This document shows, piece by piece, positions 35,701 to 49,466 of a stretch of 64,000 nucleotides of DNA. Made by a program: the position numbers and the translations under genes. The stretch lies in contig NC_134030.1 in NCBI RefSeq assembly GCF_964204645.1, positions 9,389,222 to 9,453,221 of the forward strand. Direction: 5' to 3'. Origin of the DNA: Tubulanus polymorphus. Lineage: Eukaryota; Animalia; Nemertea. The notes beneath the pieces are model-generated. The model saw only the letters and a list, made by a program, of their open reading frames with translations. It did not search any database and was not told where the DNA came from. Position 1 is the first letter of the stretch, and each line of letters begins with the position of its first letter.

Positions 35701-38700
35701 AATATCGCTCTCACTGCGGACATCAATGGTCTACCTGTTGGATATAACTACACTATCAGTGTAAGTACTTCAGTCCATGTAGATGGCCACTCATTTCTGT
35801 CTGAATAGTTAACCTGGCAAGTTTCCTAAAACTCGTTCTAAATGGATAATGTTTTCAAAGGTGCATGATATAAACTCCTTTGATATGAGCAAAATATCTG
35901 AAACTCCATTAAAACTTCTTCAATGTTTAGAAATAGGCTATTAGAAATATTTGTGTAGTTTGTAGTTGTTCGGTAAACTACCGGTACGCTTAAATTTGTA
36001 ACGTTGGGACTGGGACTTGTGTCTACCCAATAAAGCGGTTAACAAATTAGGAACTGAGTTTAGGTAGTAATGAGGATAAAAATGATAAAACCACTAAATA
36101 AATGGTTTTCTGAGAAAAAAAGTAACAAATTTGGGAGGTGTCCACAGTAATTGGGATATAAAAATGGTGCAGACACTTCCTCAAAATTTTTCCTTGAAAA
36201 TGTCTATCCAGGAATGACTTCCGTAGGGAACCTGCTTGGAAGTGCTCAATGTGATACTTATAAACAACTGAGGCTTGTGGCGTGAAAGAGGGTATTTGTA
36301 CTAATATTTGTACAATGTAGGTTACACCATGGACGAACGCTGGCCCTGGTCCGACTGCGAGAACGTTCATATTTTTAGAGGAAGGTGCGGTTATCCGTTC
36401 GGTCGATGTATCCACGATAACCGCGGTTCCGACTGCCACGACCGTGAAGGTTTATTGGAAACCGCCGCAAACCAAATCCAGCATAAAGGGTTACTACGTG
36501 AATTTGGTGGCGACAAAGACCCATGAAGCGAAGACATGCGTCGCCCCACCGACTGTTAAAAACTGTTCCTGTTCGTGTAAGTTTATATGTGTTGTCCTTT
36601 TATTTGGCATTGATCGTAGTGCTCTGAATCTAATCTTGAAATGATGGCATCATTATGTTGAAATATATCCAAATCGTCGGGCTTGCTACAGTAGACTACG
36701 CACGGGTTGGAGCCGATCGACTTGGATAACCGACGTAATATCGAAACTTTATAAAACATACACACGCATCAAGTTCTGAAAACCCGACAGGGGTAACAGG
36801 GGCTTCTCGGTTATGAAAATTTCTCCTGAATTTTCTCAGCAGTAACAATGATAAACCGTGTAATAACTAACATTTCAAACGGTTCCCAGGCGTCATGTTC
36901 CAACATTTTATGAAATAGGGCTTGAAATTCGTGTAACTTACCGGTATTGACCTAGCATTTTTCCGTCTTTCTCCGAAATTAGTTACCAATCTAGCATGTG
37001 ACACGGAATATCAGATAACCATACAGATATACAACAACATCAATACGGGTTCGGAAAGCGGTCGCCGATATATCAAAACGCTCGGACAGTCGCCAGGAAT
37101 CCCCAAGTACTTGCGCGCTGAATTAGCTGGAAACACCGCCGTAACGATATCATGGGTTCCTCCATCAGTTCATTCAAAACCCTTCGTAAGTCAGTAACAT
37201 AATTCTGCTAAAAGTTAAACTGCATAATGTAATTCTGCTAAAAGTTAAACCGCATAATGCGGGAAATTGTGGACTGAGGAAATAGGTCGGCATGATGCAA
37301 AATGCAGATGAAAAATCATATTCTACGAAGTGCGAGTGACTGATGGAAATTGCAAATTGTATAGATATCTGGATCTCTGGATCTCATCTGAATTAAAACG
37401 TTTAACTACCAATGGTAAAACAACATATTATTTTCTCATTTGGTTTGATAGGTATACACGGTTTTCTACGATCACGACAACAGTCACATGACGGAATGGA
37501 ACTTGGGAATATTCTCGCTCAACGCGACCACTCGATCGACGCAGTTCACGGTCAGGAACTTGCACGCCTGCGAAGAATACAGTTTCCGCGTGCAGATCAC
37601 CGGTCCCACGTGCCCCGGGCCACTGAGCAGCCCGACTGCGATCAGGACTGTATTCGGTAAGAGGTTTTTATATGAAGCATGAATCAGTTAAGCCTCAATG
37701 ATTAAAGATTGCTCATGGGAATACGTATAGTTGGTTAAAGATATCTTGCGTATAAATATCATAGTAACAATGGACTTTCGATTTGTGTCAATGTCAACTA
37801 TCCACTGATTAACTGTAAGCAACTTTTACACAACTGGACCCTGGTGTCATGTAGTTGACAGCAAATGCAAATCTCTTTAAGAAAAAATTTTTTTTTAAAG
37901 TTAGCTGTTGACTGCTGTAAATTGTACTGATCATGGTACTCAGAAATTATTCATCATGTTTAAATTCTGAATTTATTGACGATTTCTTTTTAGATGCGAC
38001 CGCTCCACCAAAGTATTTGAAAGTGATTTCGCAGACACCAAAGCTTATCAATATAACTTGGGAAGCGGCGTGTGACTTTGTCACCACTCCGATGGTATGA
38101 TCATTAACTCTTTCAAATCTAAAACTTGAAGGACAATTCATTCAATTTGTCGACAGAACGTTCAAACGATAAATAGTTTAGTCAATCGATAGACAGCAGT
38201 ATCAATTGATAGACAGAACATTCAAATGATTGATAATTTATTCAATTGATGGAGAGTTCATTCAATTGATAGGCGGTTGTTTCAATTTATAGACAGAACA
38301 TTCAATTGATATGCAGTAGTTTCAATTGATAGGCAATAGTTTCAATTGATATGTAGAACATTCAATTGATAGATAGTTTATTCAATTGATATGCAGTAGT
38401 TTCAATTGATAGGCAATAGTTTCAATTGATATGTAGAACATTCAATTGATATGTAGAACATTCAATTGATAGATAGTTTATTCAATTGATATGTGGTAGT
38501 TTCAATTGATAGGCAGTAGTTTCAATTGATAAATAGTTTATTCAATTGATATGTAGTAGTTTCAATTGATAAATAGTTTATTCAATTGATATGTAGTAGT
38601 TTCAATTGATAGGCAGTAGTTTTAATTGATAAATAATTTATTCAATTGATGGAAATTTCATTCAATTGATAGGCAGTCATCATCATCTGTCGGCTGCAGC

Positions 38701-41700
38701 GCAGGCGACCACAAGTCTCCGCCAACTGACTCGATCTTGGGCTATGCGAACTATCTCTCTCTCATCGGCACCTCCGAGGAGACTCTGGATGTAGCCCAGG
38801 AAGCTGAGACGAGGACACCCTACTCGGCGTTTCCCATGGGATGGTACATATAGGCAGTAGCGTCGTGCTGGTTCTTCTTCTGGCATGCGGAGGAGGTGAC
38901 CTATGAACATAAGCTGCCGTTTGATGACATGCTCCATCAGAGGTCTCGTCCCAGTGTCTCTATAGATTGTTGCGTTTGAGACATGGTCGCTCTTTTTAAT
39001 GCCAAGCATAATGCGATAGCATGATGTAGCGAAAGCATTGATCTGATCTGCTATTTCAGAGGTAGCTATCCAGGACTCGCTGCCGTAAAGCAAGACTGTT
39101 CTGCAGGAAGTATTGAAAAGGCGGATTTTGGTGTTAATTTGCTTCTCTAGAGCCTTTCCAGTTTCCAGAAGGCGGTCCAGGCCAGAGCCTTTCTTCTTTT
39201 GAAGTCGGACTTGCTGTTGGCCGTCATAGAGCCCAAGTATTTGGAGTCATTTACTCTGGCGATTTCCTCCCCATAGACTTTAAGTGATTGGCTTGAGTTG
39301 CACCCAGAGCTCATGAATTCAGTATTTCCGTCGAGTACTGTACCCTTTCCTATGGTTTTTGCCAATATTTTCTAAATTTGGATTTATCGCCAATGGTTTT
39401 TCTATACGACCCGGCCCTGCGGTATTGCATTTAGCCACCGGCGAAATCCGTCATCTTTTTTCTTGGCGTTCTCGCAGTAGAACGCGTTGGATTTTTTCGC
39501 CGTAAAAATCTGGGAATTAGGATATTAGGGAGTTTTCACTCTCGTAACGGTGAGTCCGTTCGGTTTGGGGGTTATCCCTGATTTCTTTTTTTCCGAAAGA
39601 ATTTTATTTACAAATATAATTTGATTGAATTGAATTGAATTGTTTTGATTTGTAACAGGATAATTATGCCACCCCCTCCTAAGGGTCAGCATTTGTTTGG
39701 CACGATTCATGTGCGTCGTGCAGGCGCAAATCCGGTCAAATATGTGCAAGGAGCAATCCTTGCAATATTTGCGTCGTGTGGTCCGAGGACCTTTGGCTTC
39801 GGGCCGATAAGGCTCTTAAACTAAGAGATCGTCGTCGAGTTAGCAGGGATTCGTCGGTTTCGGCCGATGTGCCAACCGACGTTTCTAATCCTGTTTCTTA
39901 TCGTAAAGCGGAGCGGTCGCCGGTCGTTCAGGTACGATCGGCTTCCCAACTCCGTTCACCGGGGAGGAACGCTGGTTCACCGGCACCGGTCTCCGGTCAT
40001 TCACCGGTCTCTGGTCGTTCACCGGTTCGGCCGGTTCGGCCGGTTCAGACTACATGTTCGGAACCGAGCGCGCGCCGCGGTAGTCGCGAACGGCCCGCAC
40101 CGGTTCAGTCGGTACCGGTCCGGGTCGGGCATCGGTCCGGTTCGGTCCGGTTCGGCCACCGGTCCGGTCCAGACGTCGTCCGGTTCAAAACATCCGGTAC
40201 GTTCATCGTCTGATTCTGATCGTCGCTCCGGGGATAGAGCTCGCTCTCCCACTAGATTTAGACGCCGGGAGCGTAATAAACGAGCAAGATCTCCTTCTCG
40301 CAGATCAAGGTTTGATCGCGAGAGGGACAACGATCGTTATTGTCGGAAGTTTCGCCGTCGGTCTTCTCATCGTTCGTCGACGTCGGTTAGCGATGAAAGC
40401 GATTCTTCTAGTAGGTCGCGATCCCGTTCGAGGGACCGTCACCGAAGTCGGCATGATCGTCGGGATACTGGAAAATACCTGACTCAGAAGGATTTCCATG
40501 TATTTGAGGAGAAAATTTTAAACTTGTTATCTTCGTCGCAACAAGTCGCTGCAACTTCTACAACAGGTAAGCCTATTCCTGATTGTCCGGTTAGAAGTTC
40601 GCCAGCCCACTCAGTTTTTCGGAATTCTGACTCTGAATTCCTGGATGCTGCGGTAGGGTCTGATTTCAATGAGGATCCGGTCCCAGAGGCGGCAATTCCT
40701 TCTGGGGTCGTTCCTGTCGCAAGCAATTGTGGGTTGCCCCAGACGATGGGGGCTTCCCTGGCTCGCAATGTATCTCCGTCCCGTTCAGTTTTATCCGAAC
40801 CAGCGGGGGACATGCCATTTAGAGCGATGATAAGTGAGTTCTTTGTCAAGCCAGGGCAACTCGCGCTAAGCCCACAGCAGCTCCTCTGGTCGGTGAGTCA
40901 ATGGAAGCTTATCGCCCTCCGGACTCCGATCTTAACGTTTTACGGGAATCGTCAGCGGTTTCGAGAGAATGGGCTCGATTGGATACGCAATTATGGGGTG
41001 AATGTCGGCCTGGAACTTTTTCATTTCCCCCTCCAGAACGGGGTATGAAATCTGGGAAATATTTTAGTTCAACCGATCCACCTATAGGCGCATTTCGCTC
41101 GGCGTATTACGCAACTCCAGGTGCTGTGGATCACAGTCATAACTGCCTGGATGCTGATTATACTTTGATCAGCCCGGATACTGTTACAGCACAGTCGGGT
41201 ATTCGTTTGCCTAAGTCCGGTTTGGTGGCCATGACGTCAATCCTGGACAATCTTACCAGGGTTGGTTCGTTTCAAGATATGGCACTTAAGGTGTTGACGG
41301 GTGAGCTTCGCGAGACTCACGCCGCCGTTCATGCGGGCTCCGACCCAGAGTCAGTTGCCCTAAAACTGGAGGGAATGGACCGGATTATCCAATCTTTGGC
41401 TCGGTCTGTTTCGCATGTAATTCCGTTGTCGGTTCGGGGTCAGGCTAATCTGGTGTTAGCCTCCCGTCAGTCAGTGATGGACTCCAGTGGCAAAATTCGT
41501 CTACCGGATATGGTGTCCAATGCTTTGCTGAGAGCCCCATTGGGGACGTCTTCACGTCTCTTCTCCGGTTGGTGCGCTCCGGTTTCCGCAGAGCTGAGGA
41601 AGATTCGGGAGGTTGAGGCCAAGTCCAACCCCCGAACTCCGTGGAAAAAGCGTTCTGGTCCGACGCCGGCGGCGCAAGGTTCGGCACGGACGCAAACAGG

Positions 41701-44700
41701 ACCATCTCAAATTTCAGCGCTTTCTCAGGCGGCTTCGGATGCCGGTTGGAGAACTAGCGCACAACTTCAACAATCGTGTCAAGCCTCGTCCGGTCGTAAC
41801 AGTTCCGGTTCGTATCGAGGCAAGAGGAAGGCTCCAAAAAAGGGGCTCTTCCTTTCGGAAAAACTCGAAATGAATTCTTGGGACCAGTGGGAGGTTGTCT
41901 GCAGCAGGCAGCAACCCACTGGTCCGACCTCTTTGGAGACGGTTGGCCCTCCCGGGTCGTCTCTCGGGGCTACCGTCTCCGTTTCCTAAGGCGACCGCGC
42001 CTGATGAGGTCAGCTCCCGACATGCGGCCAAAACCAGGTCAGGAGGCCTTAATCTCTCCGGCTCTCAAGGAACTGGCAGAAAAGGGAGCGATAGAACCAG
42101 TTTGCAACGAAACTTCTCCCGGCTGGTTTTCTCGAATATTCATGGTACCAAAGGCCACAGGGGGTCAACGGACAGTGATAGATCTGTCATCCCTCAATCG
42201 GCACCTAGACATTCCAAGGTTCAGGATGACCAAGCCCAAGGACGTGATTCAAGGGCTCCGTCCGGGTCAATGGGCGGCTTCATTGGACCTGAAAGATGCT
42301 TACTTTCAGGTTCCAATTCACCCAAAATCTCGGCGATTTCTCAGGATAAAGTGGAAAGGCCGCCAGTTCCAATTCAGGTCTCTTCCATTTGGCCTCAGTA
42401 CGGCCCCGTGGGTTTTCACCAAGTTGGTCAAGTCAGTTCAGAAGGTACTTCAGTCAAGGGGTGTTCGACTGTTCGTTTACCTCGACGACTGGTTAATAGT
42501 CGCGAATTCGGCTCAGGAATGTCGGGAGGCAATGACCTCAGTCTTGGACTTAGTCCATCAGCTAGGGTTCCGCGTAAACAGGGAAAAATCTCAGTTGACG
42601 CCGGCCCAACAGTTCACTTATCTCGGCATGGACTTCGATCTCTGAATCGGCAAAGTCTTTCCGTCTATGGTTCGAGTGGCCAAACTTCAAGAAGCTGTAG
42701 CGGGAGTGTCCACAACCCCGAGAACAGCTCGTTACTGGTCACGGCTTCTAGGCTCCATCAGCTCCATGGGTCTGGTGGTGCCCTTAGGCCGCCTCAGAAG
42801 CAGGCGCTTGCAACAATATTGGAAGGTCTTCTGGTCTCAGTCGAAGGGCAACTGGGAGGCCTTGATTCCCGTACCTCCAACCGATCTAAGTCCGGATCTT
42901 CAGTGGTGGGCGGCCACTACGAATCTTCGGCTCGGGGTGTCACTAGCCCCGTTAGAGGCTCCAGTTCGTGTATTCACGGATGCCAGTCACCAAGGTTGGG
43001 GGGCACATCTGGAGAACCGAGTCAAAGCCGGGAAATGGTCTCGCTACGAGGCCACCAACCACATAAATTTCCTAGAAATGCTGACCGTGTGGAAGGCCCT
43101 GAAGTTCTTTCACAGGAGAGTGGAGGGCCACCACGTTTGGTTAGCCACAGACAATTCAACAGTGAGGGCTTACCTTCAGAACCAAGGAGGCACTCACTCA
43201 GAAACCCTCACAGGTCTGTCGGCCAAAATTCTTCTTTGGTGCCAGACAAAGGGCGTGTCCCTGACTGTGGCACATTTAGCAGGGAAAAGGAACGTGATGG
43301 CCGATGCTCTGTCTCGTCGAGGTCAGGCTATTGCGACAGAATGGGTTCTCCACCAAGAAGTAGCCGATCGGGTTCGGGGCATTTTTGGCAATCCGCTGCT
43401 GGATCTGTTTGCCACCCGGTTCAATCGGAGGTGTCCTCTGTTTGTGTCCCCGTTTCCAGACGCGGAAGCGTGGGGGGTCGATGCCTTCTCTCTGGACTGG
43501 TCGGGGATGCATGCGTATGCGTTCCCGCCCACACCAGTCCTGCCGCGCTTACTGGATCAAATAGAGAGATCAGTCAATTGCAACATAGTTCTGGTAGCAC
43601 CATGTTGGCCGGCTCAGAAATGGTTCCTACCACTTCTCAACCTACTGTGCGACAACCCCAGGATTCTTCCAAATTTCCCATCGCTTCTGTCTCAGGGGAT
43701 CTTTCGGCATCATCCAAACAGCCAGTGGTTAAATCTGCTCGCCTGGCCATTGTCCAGCGATCCTTGTCAGCTTCAGGCTTTTCAGAACAGGCTGCCTCCT
43801 TTATCGCAGGATCTAAGCGGCCATCAACAAGTACCATTTACGATGCCAAATGGAGTCATTTTGCGGATTGGTGTGCTGCAGGGGAAATTGATCCATGCTC
43901 ACCCTCTGTAGCTCAATTGGCAGATTTTTTACTGCACCTATTTGTAGCAAAAGGTTTACAGGTCATAACTATTAAAGGTTACCGCTCCGCGATTTCTCAT
44001 ACATTGCGTGCTTCTGGATGGCCAAATGTAGCAGGGGATCATCGGATATCCCAGCTGGTTGCTGGGTTTTCTATTTCCCGGCCTCGGGTAACAAGGACAG
44101 TTCCACCATGGGATCTGTCTGTAATTTTGAAGAAGTTAATGGAGGCTCCATTTGAACCTCTTTCGGCAGCGTCTTTTGCAAATTTGTCAAAAAAGACTGT
44201 ATTTTTGCTGTTCTTGGCTTGCTCGGCCCGTCGCTCTGAGATTCATGCACTTTCAGTCCGACAAGGTCACATTGTCTTTGGGCCAGCGAATGAATTTGTT
44301 TCGCTGCGGCCTGCTTTGGAATTTTTGGCAAAGAACCAACGACCAGGCTCGGTTGGGCGTCAATGGCGAATTGAAGCCCTAAAACATCAAGTGGAACCGG
44401 GCATCCCGGACAGGACTTTATGTCCTGTGCGGGCGTTGTGTTTCTATTTAGATCGCTCTGCTTCACGGAGGGGTTCACGGGAGCGGTTATTTATTCCGCT
44501 GCTGGATCACCTAAAGGGTGATATTTCGCGGGACACAGTAGCCCGATGGGTCTCTTCAATGATCAAGGACATTTTATTGAAGGAGAATCTTTCCTCGGAG
44601 GGAGTCGTTTCTCATCAAGTGAGGTCTATGGCTACTTCCTGCGCAGACTTTTCGGGTGCTCCGTTGGAGGAAGTCTGTCGGGCCGCCTTTTGGAATTCAC

Positions 44701-47700
44701 CGTCGACATTCATGTCATTTTATTTACGGGATGTTTCAGGCCAGTTAGGCTCATTAGCTTCACTTGGTCCTGTTGTCATGGCTCAAGGTGTCCGTTCTTT
44801 CCGATCGGACCCTTTAGTGTAGAATATTTATGTAGCATTATCAGGATCACAGGGGGTGTATCCTTGTACATAGTTTGGGCTCATATCTGCAAGTATTAAT
44901 TTCGCAAAATTCTGGGGGGGGCCCCTGAGCTGGACGGACTCACTGTGGCCAACCGGTCTTCCCTGTGCTACAGTGCTCCATTCCGTGCTTGAGTAAGTGC
45001 TCTCTTTTTCCCTCTTACCTTGCGTTTGAGCGGTGGTTTTTCTATCTACCTTTCCCACCATCCTTGTGCTAGGCTAGTCTAGCAAAAACCATAGGAAAGG
45101 GTACAGTACTCGACGGAAATATTATAATTTTTGGAACTAAAATTTGTATTTCCGAGTAGTACTTACCCTTTCCTATGGTGGGAATCCCGCCCACCTGCCC
45201 CGCATAGCTGTTTTTTTTTGTCTGCTATGACGAAAAAAGATGGCGGATTTCGCCGGTGGCTAAATGCAATACCGCAGGGCCGGGTCGTATAGAAAAACCA
45301 TTGGCGATAAATCCAAATTTAGAAAATATTGGCAAAAACCATAGGAAAGGGTAAGTACTACTCGGAAATACAAATTTTAGTTCCAAAAATTGTAATTTTT
45401 GGAACATTAACAATGAGGCCCACTTTTTCAGCAGCCATTGTGGAGTTGTCAATTTGCTGCTGCGCTCTTGGTATGAGTGACTCCAATAGGGCAATGTCAT
45501 CCGCAAAGTCGAGATCATTTAGGTGTTGAGCAGGGTGTCGTCTTGATCGGCGTTTGTGCGTTTCCGCTCCCTGGTTGGTGTCTTTGGTGGCTAGTTTCAT
45601 AATGTAGTCTACCACGATGATGAACAGAAACGGAGCTAGTACGTCCCCCTGAAGGAGACCAGTTGTGACTTCAATGGTTCAGATATGCTGCCATTTACCA
45701 TCACTGCACTGCTGGAGCCATGATATAGTACGCTGATGGCATTGACCACTTGTTCTGGTATGCCATAATGACGTAGTATGGCAAACATCATTTGCCGATC
45801 GATGGAGTCAAAGGCTTTCTTGAAATCTATGAATGTGACATTTAGTGGAAGTTGATAGTCCTGGAAACCTTCTATGATTCTCCGCAGAATATGAATCTGT
45901 TGTATGCAGCTTCGCCCTTTTCTGAAACCTGCTTGGTTCTTCCTCAGGAGCGGGTCAACATGGTCACGTATGCGGTTCAGGAGAATCTTGTTATATACTA
46001 TCCTATACTATATATACTACGATAGGCAGTAGTTTCAATTTATAGACAGAACATTCAATTGATAGATTGTTCAACTGATAGCAATATTCAAATCTTTTTC
46101 ATGCATTTCCTGCAGATGTACGTTGTTAGTGTTATGGAAAACAAAACCAAACGGGTTGACGCGCAGGTGACGAATGAGACCATGTCGTCGCGCCTGTCTT
46201 ACTGGTTTACCGATGGTATACTTCGAGGTGCGACCTACTTGATAAATGTGCGAACTCGAACGAAAAACTCGAGGCCAACAGAGTCCGTCATTGCCCGAAT
46301 ACGTAAGCTAGTTTTTGTCGTCTCTTGTGAATATTCATGATTTTGAAATTCATGGATCTACCTATTCAGATTAAATGATTTTCAAATGTCTGGGTGGCTA
46401 CTGACCTGGAAAACCTAGAAAACTCAGGAGATCAGAAAAATCTACAATATATCGGGGAATTCTCTGATTCACTCAGGAAATTTTATCTAAAACACATGGA
46501 AAAATCAGGGAAAACTCGGGGGACTTGTAAATGGGCAGAAAGTGGCCACCCTGAGTGCTACTTAAGTATCTGAACTTTTTCTGTCAATGTATGTGTAGAG
46601 TCAAACATGCTTATGTTATCATTGGATACTAAAGTTGTCTTTTGATTGTTGATTTATTGATTATATATTCTTTATATATTTTATAATTCCTATTCGATTC
46701 TCTATTGCATCCTCACATCACATGGTTAAGCCGTCAACATTGTGATCGCCAACTATAACAATTTATACAGGTACTGTAATATGGTCATTGATATTGAATA
46801 TGTTGAATTTTCCTAGCACCATACCCGGCTCCGGTCCACATCAAGGCGTTCAAGGCGTACGGGAAGGTGTTGGTCTTTTGGGATAAACCACGCGAGATGC
46901 CCAAGAATGCCGAGGTAAATTCACTTTAGTAATTCGAGATTTAGCCATTATTTTTCAAATGAAAAAAACCTACCGGTTGTGTCTGGCCGGCTTCTTTCGA
47001 AACAAGTCGCTGGGCCTGATAAAATTAAGATCAGGTCAGAAGAGGGATTTCACTTAGATCAGCGACCTGTTCGAAGCCTCAACTGCTTGAGATAAGCGTG
47101 AAATCTATGCCTTCTTTACAAAGCTAAAAAACCCATAGTCTTCCAAATAATTTGGATGGAATATTGATGGGGTATTAAGTACAACAATAGTTATGTAATA
47201 ACTGGTAACGCATGCAGTGAAGCAATGAAACATAGTATAATTTAATTTTCGTTTCGTCCCGTTTTTAGTTCGAAGTTTGGTATCGCAGTGATAAGACTCA
47301 ATTCGTATTGAAAGCTGTCACGAATGAAACGTCGCATCCATTCCTTAACCTAAAGGAAGGCCTCCATTACTTCAAAGTTCGTCTGGCAGCGGCCAACGGT
47401 AGTTATCCGGGCGAGTTCAGCCATGTGGCGCCCAGTCTCGTCAGCAGAGTGGAGAAACCTCGTAAGTATAGAAGTAAAAAGCTCGATATGTGGGAATTTA
47501 TCTCGGTATTTTGTGAAAATTTGATGAAATAATCATAATATTCATGTATTTCTCAGCCTAAATAGTATTTTCTGTCGAGGGGATCTGGCGTTTTATAAGT
47601 ACCTTTTGTTAAGAATACGGTATCTCATTAGAATTGATGTTCCTTTCAGAATCTGGCATTTTTGGCGTTTTCCGTTCAGAACCTGGTGTTTCATTATAAT

Positions 47701-49466
47701 TTTCCGTTTAGAATTAGTATATGCTCTTTAATGAAATTTGTATTCGAATGCTATATTCTCCTTAGAATTAGCGAATTAGCATTATTTCATCAACTGTTAA
47801 TAAGTTTTAATAAATCCCACACTATATACGAAATTTATAAGATTATAAGCAAATTTTATTATACACAGAATTAAAACCAAAAGACATGACGTTTAAAACT
47901 CTCTCTAGAGACCTGACGATGGTCTTCAGATAGAGTCTGAAACGTCCGGTCTTTTAGTTTTAATTTTTTTAATAATAAAATTTGCAGTTTATCTTACAAA
48001 TCTTGTAAATAGTTTGGGTATCAAAATTGATATCTGTTCTCCACATCAGAGTGTGGCTATTCCAGCATCAACTATTGATATTTTAGGATCTGGTCCGAAC
48101 GCTGGAACTGAGACCTTGAGCCATACGAACTGGGTAGCGATTGTTGTTTCCGTCGTCGTGGTATGCGTTGCCCTCGGCGTTGTGCTCGTGTTGTACGTAA
48201 TAAGACATCGACGTCTGCAGCGCAGTTTCCTGTCCTTCGCTAACAGCCATTACGACACGCGATCCGGCACGACTCGTTTCACTACCAGCGACGGAGATAC
48301 CGAACTCGGTAAGCTTCCCCGAACACGGTCGTTTCACGATACTTCTACAGGGATGAGAATTCCCCGCGGATCCGCGGTTTCCCGCGGATTTCAGTATTGA
48401 AAAATATCAATTTTCCAAATAGTCCAAAAATGATGTAAAAGTATGGGGGGGGGGTGATGATCTCACTCAATTGGTCCGGCGCGATCGGTAATCAGATGAA
48501 CCGTAAAAGCGTTCAGTGCCTGTTTTACTTATCGTCACGTAAAAGTATCGCATTTCAATGCATATTCATTGCAACACAGTGATTTTGTATGTACATTTGT
48601 ACTACGATGAGTGTGTAGCCTATGTATTTTATCGATCGGTTGCAGACACGCACGCACAGCAACAGTAGTAACGTATATAGGTCTACTTACTGTTGCTGCG
48701 TGTGTGTGGCGAACGCTTTCGGATATTATACACTACTTGGTGATGATTTTTAGTGAGCATTCATCGGCGCATTTTTACTGCAATAATTCAGGGCTCGACC
48801 CGTAATGCATGAGATGCTGAATGTCATCAAATGAGGATGTACCACATTGGAACTAGCCATTACCTTCCAAAATATAATAGTCGTTCATGGGTTCAAGATC
48901 GCTCTAAGTGCTCGGAAAACGTATTTAATTTCTAAAATTTTCTTGGGGGAGGGCCCCCAAACCCCCCGGAAATAGCTTCGCGCCTTAGGCGCTCGCTAGT
49001 GCTGACGGCCACGCCGTCAGCTGGTTCGCGTATGTCACTCAAGAAAAATAACCCGCGGATTTTACAGGTCGGCGTTCTCATCAATGCTTCTATCCGTGGC
49101 TGTTGATTCCATGGCGCGTCCCCGGGATATTTCCTGGCAGGGTCGAATTTCTCTTTCCAAAGGGCCAAATCCACTAGATTCAGCACACTGGGGTGGTTTT
49201 TTTTCTTTTGCGTATTAATTAGTCAGCACTGATTAGGATCAAGGTTAGAATCCTCGCATATGAGGGCGCTGCTACTGAAGCTGTTGAGGATTCCACTTCT
49301 GGTATGGTTGAGGATTAGTAGCAAGAGTCAGCATTGAAGAAACACTGGTAAATCATTATAGACTTACGAACGAAAATTATATATTTTTTCATTTCTTCCA
49401 GATGGCGATGAGGACTCTCCGATGATTGGCGGATTTGCTGATGACGAACCACTCGTTATTGCGTAG
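5788..49466 (+). CDS. SORL1: Sortilin-related receptor (SorLA/LR11)
   Basis: Exons read with consistent phases: 5788-6234, 8272-8514, 9147-9308, 9808-9875, 10366-10552, [11287-11376 or 13321-13419], 15572-15747, 16605-16800, 17212-17391, 17507-17589, 18172-18347, 19285-19477, 19981-20100, 20787-21042, 21318-21547, 22520-22923, 23747-23882, 24000-24175, 25657-25773, 26359-26493, 28192-28476, 28732-28866, 29195-29329, 31472-31603, 31928-32215, 33159-33276, 33774-33958, 34236-34357, 35632-35760, 36321-36576, 36983-37185, 37452-37656, 37994-38094, 46116-46302, 46817-46914, 47269-47461, 48087-48308, 49402-49466. Product has a signal peptide, furin site [36 protein letters not shown] repeats, EGF, 10 LDLa repeats, FN3 repeats, a TM helix, FANSHY and C-terminal [19 protein letters not shown]. 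Confidence 0.97.
7473..7540 (+). repeat. tRNA-derived SINE-like head (similar heads at ~13553-13620 on + and ~54033-54098 on -)
   Basis: A-box TGGTCTAGTGG and B-box GGTTCGAGTC at tRNA-like spacing, but acceptor and anticodon stems do not pair. Confidence 0.55.
8073..8280 (+). repeat. 104-bp tandem duplication spanning the SORL1 exon 2 splice acceptor
   Basis: TTTACAG|TTCGCGTTG occurs with exon starts at 8168 and 8272, each preceded by near-identical intron sequence. Confidence 0.93.
8659..9025 (+). mobile_element. Composite MITE family with CAGGG termini; copies at ~8659-9025, 9396-9570, 13451-13545, 15125-15486, 17619-17992, 21091-21287, 22033-22450, 35820-36234
   Basis: Shared 5' GACTCCTTGATTCCTTAAAAACTCC and 3' TATCCAGGAATGACTGATCTGTAGGGACCCTG blocks; longer copies enclose an inner TACAGTA...TACTGTA inverted-repeat module. 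Confidence 0.85.
11287..11376 (+). CDS. SORL1: SORL1 VPS10-domain exon variant 6a (candidate mutually exclusive exon)
   Basis: TTTTACAG acceptor, ATG|GTTGGT donor, 90 nt, phase 0/0; encodes [30 protein letters not shown], alignable with variant 6b. Confidence 0.72.
12088..12311 (+). pseudogene. Probable third, MITE-disrupted copy of SORL1 exon 6
   Basis: Removing the MITE at 12162-12286 and one TSD copy gives in-frame [32 protein letters not shown] (96 nt) after TTCAAG. There is no phase-0 GT donor. Confidence 0.45.
13321..13419 (+). CDS. SORL1: SORL1 VPS10-domain exon variant 6b (candidate mutually exclusive exon)
   Basis: AATCAG acceptor with an upstream pyrimidine tract, GAG|GTAAGT donor, 99 nt, phase 0/0; encodes [33 protein letters not shown], matching the LWVS segment that precedes the ADASEDQ motif in SorLA. 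Confidence 0.85.
18997..19246. mobile_element. piggyBac-type MITE, second family
   Basis: TTAA|CCTCTTC ... GAAGAGG|TTAA with an extended imperfect TIR. Confidence 0.75.
19522..19687. mobile_element. hAT-like MITE with a 5-bp TSD
   Basis: TIR CAG(G/T)GTTTTCAATAAGA; AGATA on both flanks. Confidence 0.8.
20224..20457. mobile_element. Harbinger-like MITE
   Basis: TIR GGCCA(A/C)CTTCGGTT, CTG on both flanks, internally palindromic. Confidence 0.78.
24206..24794. mobile_element. Tc1/mariner-type MITE
   Basis: TIR CCGTAAAAACYGGCGTATAAGTC at both ends, TA on both flanks, internal CTTATACGCCG repeats. Confidence 0.88.
26979..27833 (+). mobile_element. Non-autonomous Helitron/Helentron-type element with internal 146-bp tandem repeats
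   Basis: TTTTTAGCTCCGCTG start with a local hairpin and a matching CAGCGGAGCTA near the far end; GTC/GTCC microsatellite; AAACTT anchors at 27129, 27275, 27421 and 27567 (146-bp period). Confidence 0.78.
28564..28699. mobile_element. Short palindromic MITE family with CWG flanks (related copies ~12162-12286, 23582-23676, 31206-31316, 49921-50006, 54486-54574)
   Basis: Termini G(G/A)NCCAGTT / AACTGG(G/A)NC flanked by CAG or CTG; most copies share an internal AGTTCATTT-like motif. Confidence 0.75.
29782..31046 (+). mobile_element. Non-autonomous Helitron/Helentron-type element with internal 154-bp tandem repeats
   Basis: Subterminal inverted repeat GCCCACTTGGGA / TCCCAAGTGGGC, (GTCC)n microsatellite, ~4 units of 154 bp at ~30385-30990, 3' end CTAGT. 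Confidence 0.8.
32388..32675. mobile_element. piggyBac-type MITE (fragments also at ~15910-16058, 16470-16506, 50333-50485)
   Basis: TTAA|CCCTTTCAGTG ... CACTGAAAGGG|TTAA. Confidence 0.85.
33386..33644. mobile_element. hAT-like MITE with a 5-bp TSD (related copy ~46390-46553)
   Basis: TIR CAGGGTGGCC; TGTCT on both flanks; internal TCAGG(G/A)AA repeats. Confidence 0.8.
34549..35368 (-). mobile_element. Internally deleted DNA transposon (GGCC termini, 3-bp TSD; Zator- or Harbinger-like) retaining a truncated ORF
   Basis: TIR GGCCACAAGTAATTG.....TGTTTCTTATC inverted at the right end; TTG on both flanks; minus-strand ORF 35041-34598 ([10 protein letters not shown]...). Confidence 0.78.
38135..38677. 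repeat. ~20-bp minisatellite with a TTCAATTGATA core; resumes at 46021-46080 after the LINE
   Basis: More than 20 tandem units with a constant TTCAATTGAT half and a variable half drawn from a few recurring variants. Confidence 0.95.
39666..41989 (+). pseudogene. DIRS gag-like ORF1, frameshifted
   Basis: Starts MPPPPKGQH, then in another frame a Cys/His cluster [19 protein letters not shown], then an RS-rich segment, then the 40901-41989 segment. At least three frame changes (~39700, ~40170, ~40838). Confidence 0.7.
41878..43911 (+). pseudogene. DIRS pol: reverse transcriptase, RNase H and DNA N6-adenine methyltransferase-like domain, interrupted by an in-frame TGA
   Basis: RT motifs [26 protein letters not shown] and YLDDWL; RNase H motifs VFTDAS..GWG, HINFLE, TDNST and NVMADALSR; MTase-like LDLFAT and YAFPP. 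ORFs 41878-42645 and 42667-43911 share a frame and are separated by one TGA at 42643-42645. Confidence 0.93.
41895..44822 (+). CDS. DIRS tyrosine recombinase ORF with a long N-terminal extension overlapping pol
   Basis: 975 stop-free codons. The C-terminal part has the catalytic set R (ARRSEIHAL), K (FLAKNQ), HxxR (SHQVRS), W (FWNS) and Y (FMSFYLRD), plus LCPVRAL. The true start is uncertain. Confidence 0.92.
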   Translation: MSAAGSNPLVRPLWRRLALPGRLSGLPSPFPKATAPDEVSSRHAAKTRSGGLNLSGSQGTGRKGSDRTSLQRNFSRLVFSNIHGTKGHRGSTDSDRSVIPQSAPRHSKVQDDQAQGRDSRAPSGSMGGFIGPERCLLSGSNSPKISAISQDKVERPPVPIQVSSIWPQYGPVGFHQVGQVSSEGTSVKGCSTVRLPRRLVNSREFGSGMSGGNDLSLGLSPSARVPRKQGKISVDAGPTVHLSRHGLRSLNRQSLSVYGSSGQTSRSCSGSVHNPENSSLLVTASRLHQLHGSGGALRPPQKQALATILEGLLVSVEGQLGGLDSRTSNRSKSGSSVVGGHYESSARGVTSPVRGSSSCIHGCQSPRLGGTSGEPSQSREMVSLRGHQPHKFPRNADRVEGPEVLSQESGGPPRLVSHRQFNSEGLPSEPRRHSLRNPHRSVGQNSSLVPDKGRVPDCGTFSREKERDGRCSVSSRSGYCDRMGSPPRSSRSGSGHFWQSAAGSVCHPVQSEVSSVCVPVSRRGSVGGRCLLSGLVGDACVCVPAHTSPAALTGSNREISQLQHSSGSTMLAGSEMVPTTSQPTVRQPQDSSKFPIASVSGDLSASSKQPVVKSARLAIVQRSLSASGFSEQAASFIAGSKRPSTSTIYDAKWSHFADWCAAGEIDPCSPSVAQLADFLLHLFVAKGLQVITIKGYRSAISHTLRASGWPNVAGDHRISQLVAGFSISRPRVTRTVPPWDLSVILKKLMEAPFEPLSAASFANLSKKTVFLLFLACSARRSEIHALSVRQGHIVFGPANEFVSLRPALEFLAKNQRPGSVGRQWRIEALKHQVEPGIPDRTLCPVRALCFYLDRSASRRGSRERLFIPLLDHLKGDISRDTVARWVSSMIKDILLKENLSSEGVVSHQVRSMATSCADFSGAPLEEVCRAAFWNSPSTFMSFYLRDVSGQLGSLASLGPVVMAQGVRSFRSDPLV
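45082..45179 (+). repeat. DIRS internal complementary region (ICR)
   Basis: 45082-45120 is the exact reverse complement of 39324-39362; 45121-45179 is the reverse complement of 45338-45396 with one mismatch. Confidence 0.96.
48348..49086. mobile_element. hAT-like non-autonomous element with a 6-bp TSD
   Basis: TIR CAGGGATGAGAA / TTCTCATCAATG; CTTCTA on both flanks; subterminal CCGCGG repeats. Confidence 0.78.

Follow-up and report, generated by a model that had tools for sequence, protein, structure and literature searches.

The DIRS1-like retrotransposon in the window, the whole 64,000-nt stretch of DNA that was analyzed, has most likely been integrated into a LINE by its tyrosine recombinase (YR, putative here) through classical short-core recombination. 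The target of its family is R|TTTT(t), with a purine at −1 followed from +1 by TTTT or, by preference, by TTTTT as far as +5. The right junction of the window copy lies in a perfect 10-6-10 palindrome, from which the sequence-only reading had concluded that the family may pick its targets by a genomic half-site resembling its own right arm. Comparison of the junctions of more than sixty copies, of several empty sites and of a second DIRS family revealed that this symmetry is half systematic and half chance.

Structure of the element and of its host site

The element is 6073 nt long (39323-45395, forward strand, as are all its parts below) and sits precisely between a host purine and the T-run that follows it; its boundaries were set by the divergence of 64 right and 67 left flanks and by a paralog of the empty site (L002). 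It begins with an 18-nt left terminus, TATTTCCGTCGAGTACTG (39323-39340), that can pair with the left portion of the ICR, and with a 122-nt left ITR (39341-39462) that is 99% complementary to the right ITR, located by repeat analysis at 45232-45353. Within the 25-nt right extension (45371-45395) lie the palindrome's left arm (45380-45389) and TTGTAA, a near-palindromic hexamer (45390-45395). The ICR (45082-45179) pairs with both ends of the element, 45082-45121 with the left end at 39323-39362 (100%) and 45117-45179 with the right ITR's end and the extension at 45338-45400 (97%), and the same two-ended pairing was seen in every other copy whose ICR was read. Read as its reverse complement, the ICR yields the circle junction ..GTTCCAAAAA-TTATAA|TATTTCCGTC, with TTGTAA at the hexamer in the other copies.

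The hexamer within the ICR of the window copy (45122-45127) reads TTATAA as against TTGTAA at its right end, and this variant is private to the window copy; all other ICRs read have TTACAA, the reverse complement of TTGTAA. Two right ends elsewhere in the genome (C1:9786609 and C6:12637748) carry TTATAA, as would be expected if they were templated by a parental ICR with that variant. In another copy (G000:C4:12728730-12728782), the reverse complement of the ICR is TTGTAA-TTTTT-CCGTCGAG, with TTTTT replacing TATTT, and since no TTTTT left end occurs among 67, this ICR variant is without visible progeny.

Two overlapping ORFs of the gag region (39867-41048 and 40901-41989, spanning 39867-41989) had no Pfam match. 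The reverse transcriptase (RT; 41878-42645; RVT_1, E 8.8e-25) is in the same frame as the RNase H and the C-terminal domain typical of DIRS1-like pol (42667-43911; RT_RNaseH, E 7.9e-07). Pfam searches with whole long ORFs missed RT and YR, and shorter pieces recovered RT. The pol frame is open for 281 aa in the window copy as against 770 aa in most copies, with a stop at 42643-42645; because this stop splits RT from RNase H, the window copy is probably not autonomous, judging from its reading frames. An ORF that overlaps pol in another frame (43815-44822) is assigned as a putative YR from its context, motifs and weak similarity. The R, H-x-x-R and Y motifs are visible in its translation (ARRSE, HQVR and SFYL), Cre/Tre were its sole matches among PDB sequences, weak ones at E 0.17-0.9, and some of its nearest Atlas clusters carry PF00589, PF02899 or ALOG. 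It had no match in Pfam or NCBIfam, and its single-sequence AlphaFold model had a pLDDT of 36.

As in the DIRS1-like elements described by Piednoel et al. 2011 (PMC3266345), there are ITRs, a right extension, an ICR complementary to both ends that abut in it at a short junction, a pol with RT and RNase H overlapping the YR ORF (putative here), a short T-rich core of the NTT type in both circle junction and target, and no target-site duplication. The identical start and end trinucleotides typical of DIRS1-like elements were not found, the start being TAT in 67/67 copies and the end TTT in 59/64 and TAT in 5/64. This mismatch does not exclude DIRS1-like membership, since the literature lists similar exceptions, XtDIRS2 (TTT/TAT), TnDIRS1a (GTT/GAT) and AcDIRS1 (CTT/CAT), each a single reference copy (PMC3266345, Table 3). 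In these, as here, it is the first trinucleotide that agrees with the junction, and the last one deviates in its central base; unlike in those single copies, the asymmetry here is systematic over the 64 right and 67 left junctions.

The host is a frameshifted LINE RT fragment on the reverse strand. Its part to the right of the element (45397-46007; RVT_1, E 1e-12 and 3.6e-05) ends with ..GLIVNVPK at the junction, and its part on the other side (38686-39322, reverse strand, ..TEFMS..) is colinear with L002 across the junction at 96% identity. The genome has no close paralog other than L002, which matches over 1.2 kb at 96% identity and is uninterrupted at the site, where it reads CATGAATTCAG-TGTTT-GGAACATTAAC, differing only at the second T. 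Therefore, the insertion caused neither duplication nor deletion, and the GGAAC that follows the T-run belongs to the LINE. The G of L002 makes an Asn codon, and a LINE relative with 47% identity keeps CCA AAA (Pro-Lys) at the junction position, which indicates that AAA/TTTTT was present in the host LINE copy before the insertion. The comparison of the host thus covers one DNA paralog, there being two DNA copies of this LINE in the genome, and one protein relative of 47% identity. On these sequence comparisons, we regard the host origin of the right arm as proven. The sequence-only reading had named an uninterrupted LINE as the check on the right arm; GGAAC is present in L002, and the T-run is TGTTT in L002 but corresponds to CCA AAA in the distant relative. 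Around the host, a tandem array with a 20-bp period (~30 units) lies to the left of the LINE fragment at 38086-38717, and a matching 51-nt piece lies to the right at 46021-46071; from these matches on both sides, the LINE together with the DIRS element appears to be embedded in, or bordered by, one minisatellite.

Including L002, we identified five paralogous empty sites, in all of which the T-run is present once and the insertion is precise, with no duplication and no loss. The four further sites, found among the sequences compared, read ..CAG TTTTGA.., ..GAG TTTAGA.. (in six tandem units), ..TAA TTTTTA.. and ..TGA TTTTGT.., and in each of them the T-run equals the T-run at the filled right junction. 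Since the T-run occurs once, the inserted segment is exactly TATTTCC...TTGTAA, placed between R and T. An uninterrupted repeat within the window itself (~48564-48605, ..ACAGTGA TTTTGT ATGTAC..) is the empty site of a copy at C9:9.81 Mb (L028), and the family of this repeat carries a second DIRS insertion at another position (L023).

The family target and the palindrome at the right junction

The genome (268 Mb) holds at least 110 copies of the element; the last 31 nt of the element have 221 exact matches in it, which are right ends and ICRs, and 111 right ends are followed by TTT. We read 64 independent right flanks, all distinct, and 67 left flanks. On the right, +1 is T in all 64, +2 is T in 59 and A in 5, +3 is T in 63 and +4 is T in 62, so that the tetramer is TTTT in 56/64 and TATT in 5/64, with TTTA and TTCT among the other variants, and +5 is T in 34/64 (53%). 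Positions +6 to +20 of these 64 flanks are uninformative (≤0.2 bits). On the left, the element starts with TATTTCC in 67/67 copies and is preceded by a purine in 93% (A33, G29, T4, C1; p = 2e-13, n = 67). The 67 left flanks showed no informative position from −2 to −30, and their positions −6 to −1 bear no similarity to TTGTAA. This agrees with the earlier claim that a target can be used without homology to the hexamer.

The preference for TTTT exceeds what the sequence background provides. In the window, R-TTTT and R-TATT occur at a background of 1.6 to 1, and the targets are TTTT in 56 cases and TATT in 5 (p = 7e-8); TTTT is thus favored ~7-fold over the element's own TATT. Two of the five TATT targets (L079 and L083) continue as TATTTCC, with 7 and 9 nt identical to the left end of the element; these small numbers may reflect insertions beside left-end fragments or a favoring of longer homology to the left end.

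At 45380-45405, direct reading of the window gives GTTCCAAAAA-TTGTAA-TTTTTGGAAC, letter for letter as the sequence-only reading had it, and because TT..AA of the hexamer pair as well, the palindrome is really 12-2-12. Block shuffles of the window predicted 0.1 perfect 10-6-10 palindromes per 64 kb, and the real window contains five palindromic loci with arms of at least 10 nt. The origins proposed for the two arms were borne out: the left arm is derived from the element, as the ICR segment 45117-45179 is complementary to 45338-45400 and every other copy has the same end, and the right arm TTTTTGGAAC (45396-45405) is host LINE, as the minus-strand LINE RT translation runs through it and GGAAC occurs in the uninterrupted L002. 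Within this right arm, TTTT(T) is the family target motif, and GGAAC is specific to the site.

An A-run adjoins the near-palindromic hexamer in the right arm of the element, and therefore an insertion into a T-run always yields a partial palindrome, AAAA(A)-TTGTAA-TTTT(T), which is how most right junctions of the family read. The outer half of the palindrome behaves differently. GGAAC occurs at +6 to +10 in none of the other 63 right flanks, where 22, 27, 11, 2 and 1 flanks match it at 0, 1, 2, 3 and 4 positions, respectively, which is the chance level; with 111 copies, its chance probability of 7e-4 per copy gives an expectation of 0.08. Among the flanks with TTTTT, G is somewhat frequent at +6 (10/27), which is not significant once T is excluded. 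GGAAC is best read as a coincidence of one insertion into the LINE. A logo of the flanks of other copies, which had been suggested as the test of half-site recognition, accordingly has TTTT(t) enriched to the right of the junction and lacks the rest of the arm.

A second DIRS family, with an RT 61-67% identical to that of the window family, allowed a comparison across families, comprising this one family and 15 flanks. Its junction, GAACAAAA-TTGTAA|TATTTAC, has the same hexamer and core and a right arm ending in CAAAA. Its right flanks are TTTT in 10, TATT in 3, TGTT in 1 and TTTC in 1 (n = 15), and +5 among the ten TTTT flanks is T in 8 and G in 1, although G would be expected there from the mirror image of its arm. 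Where the right arms of the two families differ, the target thus does not follow the arm, which for this one family answers in the negative the earlier question whether a target consensus tracks the right extension in other DIRS families. The alternative raised alongside it, targeting guided by nucleic acid through the ICR, is unsupported on the same ground. One copy of this second family, which has ~15-20 copies (L103, G000:C2:21542400-21550000), is without a recognizable right ITR after the ICR. Another locus with a 66%-identical RT (L102) was rejected as a further DIRS family because no ITR or ICR was seen.

Exchange at one fixed position

In the mechanism that we consider most likely, a circular (or ICR-bridged) junction ..CCAAAAA-TTGTAA|TATTTCC.. 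would recombine with host ..R|TTTT(t).. at a single fixed point, where the hexamer meets the T, such that host bases are neither duplicated nor lost. The core would be short and T-rich, TAT in the element and TTT in the host, with the central mismatch tolerated, and in the window copy the LINE would by chance have continued with GGAAC, extending the partial palindrome to 10-6-10. The YR would catalyze the exchange and recognize the T-run directly. Because TTTT outnumbers TATT by 56 to 5 against the background of 1.6 to 1, identity to the junction core is not what is selected, and it is reasonable to infer that the protein prefers a T-run, which mirrors the right arm's A-run as well. The sequence-only reading had counted a single T shared by target and circle junction at the crossover; this holds for the unambiguous microhomology, which is T only (AT when −1 is A), whereas TATTT and TTTTT as a whole agree at 4/5 positions. 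A staggered overlap of 4-7 bp with heteroduplex was rejected, since the class of copies that it predicts, TTTTTCC on the left with TATT on the right, is absent; three of the five copies with TATT on the right had their left ends read, and these are TATTT too.

How much of the half-site idea survives depends on which part of the arm is considered. In its complete form, in which the YR picks a genomic 10-nt inverted copy of the right arm, with 6 bp of non-homologous spacer in between as in Tn916, it would account for the perfect palindrome of the window copy with its host-derived right arm, and the T-run part of the mirror is indeed found family-wide. We nevertheless consider it very improbable, since the flank logo largely refutes it: the outer five positions are uninformative in the other 63 flanks, the hexamer is always retained by the element and TATTT is invariable at the left end, leaving no products of a heteroduplex spacer, and the second family does not follow its own arm at +5. 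A second half-site in the form of an A-run to the left of the target is at most marginal, with 35% A at −11 to −7 against 30% expected (p = 0.03, uncorrected). What stands of the claim is TTTT(t) as a mirror of the A-run; what falls is the 10-nt arm. The opposite suggestion, that the right arm or its T-run derives from the element, for example from a longer right extension or from a hairpin copied in cDNA synthesis, draws on the presence of TTTT after TTGTAA in nearly all copies and on the TGTTT rather than TTTTT of the paralogous LINE. The empty sites refute it, four paralogs holding exactly the T-run of the filled junction (TTTTGA, TTTAGA, TTTTTA and TTTTGT), and the variant right junctions TTTA, TTCT and TATT match no template in the element, the distant relative retains the LINE codon AAA (K) and GGAACATTAAC is present in L002, so that its probability is practically nil.

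A more restrained version of half-site recognition deserves more weight, although we still hold it to be unlikely. Here, the YR would recognize the purine together with a single half-site, the T-run (TTTT/T), which mirrors the A-run, and at the hexamer's right border only one pair of strands would be exchanged. In this unlikely version, the junction would then be resolved by replication, as for CTX phage with XerC or for integron attC, possibly from single-stranded cDNA, and pairing of the ICR with the cDNA ends would form the site. The ~7-fold excess of TTTT over TATT, the one invariant crossover position without a second class of products, and the purine at −1, which is compatible with pairing at one base, G-T included, are all in line with this version, and DIRS-1 cDNA is largely single-stranded (PMC7192593). 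The TTTT preference does not follow from simple identity with the circle junction, whereas it does follow from recognition of a T-run mirroring the A-run. If true, this version would explain the invariant crossover, the absent heteroduplex products and the preference of TTTT over TATT. On the other hand, the second family prefers T at +5 where its arm predicts G, and a very short overlap combined with a protein preference for T-runs fits the same data. The T-run also resembles the left end of the element (TATTT) as much as it does the mirror of the right arm, and the classical short-core mechanism therefore explains most of the data.

Relation to known tyrosine recombinase systems

The circular-junction model of integration by DIRS1-like elements was reportedly put forward by Cappello in 1985 and by Goodwin and Poulter. 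According to published descriptions, these elements have at their start and at their end an NTT trinucleotide that is complementary to a circular junction of 3 bp, and they lack target-site duplications (PMC3266345); in the model, integration proceeds through recombination with a genomic trinucleotide identical to theirs and generates no target-site duplication (PMC3266345; PMC7192593). The window family conforms to this model, with TAT as the core of the element against TTT in the host. Its insertions differ from the described ones in that the middle bases of the two cores disagree (TTT vs TAT) in 92% of them, that the preference spans 4-5 Ts plus the purine at −1, and that the exchange point is fixed instead of lying anywhere within an identical trinucleotide.

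With Tn916 and related ICE-type integrases, the system shares a tyrosine recombinase and a circular intermediate (both putative here), AT-rich sites and the lack of an extended identical core. Tn916 carries 6-7 bp of its previous flank as a heteroduplex spacer. Here, unlike in Tn916, the hexamer is constant, and there is no class of spacers derived from the host: among 100 listed right ends with a free hexamer, 94 have TTGTAA and the remaining 6 differ from it by one base change or a one-base deletion, and the left flanks are without TTGTAA. Since the hexamer is never replaced by target bases, spacer exchange of the Tn916 type is not seen, and the likening of the hexamer to a non-matching Tn916 spacer is not supported. 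The donor junction resembles the core sites of Cre/loxP, XerCD/dif and lambda Int in that two imperfectly inverted arms (AAAAA / TATTT) flank a near-palindrome of 6 bp. Unlike in those systems, the target has one half-site, with no second arm and no spacer identity; a two-arm core site of the lox/dif/attB type was not found in the target, where only −1 and +1 to +5 are informative.

The 10-6-10 palindrome at the right junction should therefore not serve as evidence for recognition of a long half-site. Target choice by DIRS elements has hardly been studied experimentally, and this young family with more than 100 copies gives a picture of it at base resolution. The results sharpen the classical 3-bp model by a fixed exchange point, the absence of duplication, the R|TTTT(t) target and a systematic mismatch with the core of the element, and the target motif together with the fixed exchange point provides clear substrates for biochemistry.
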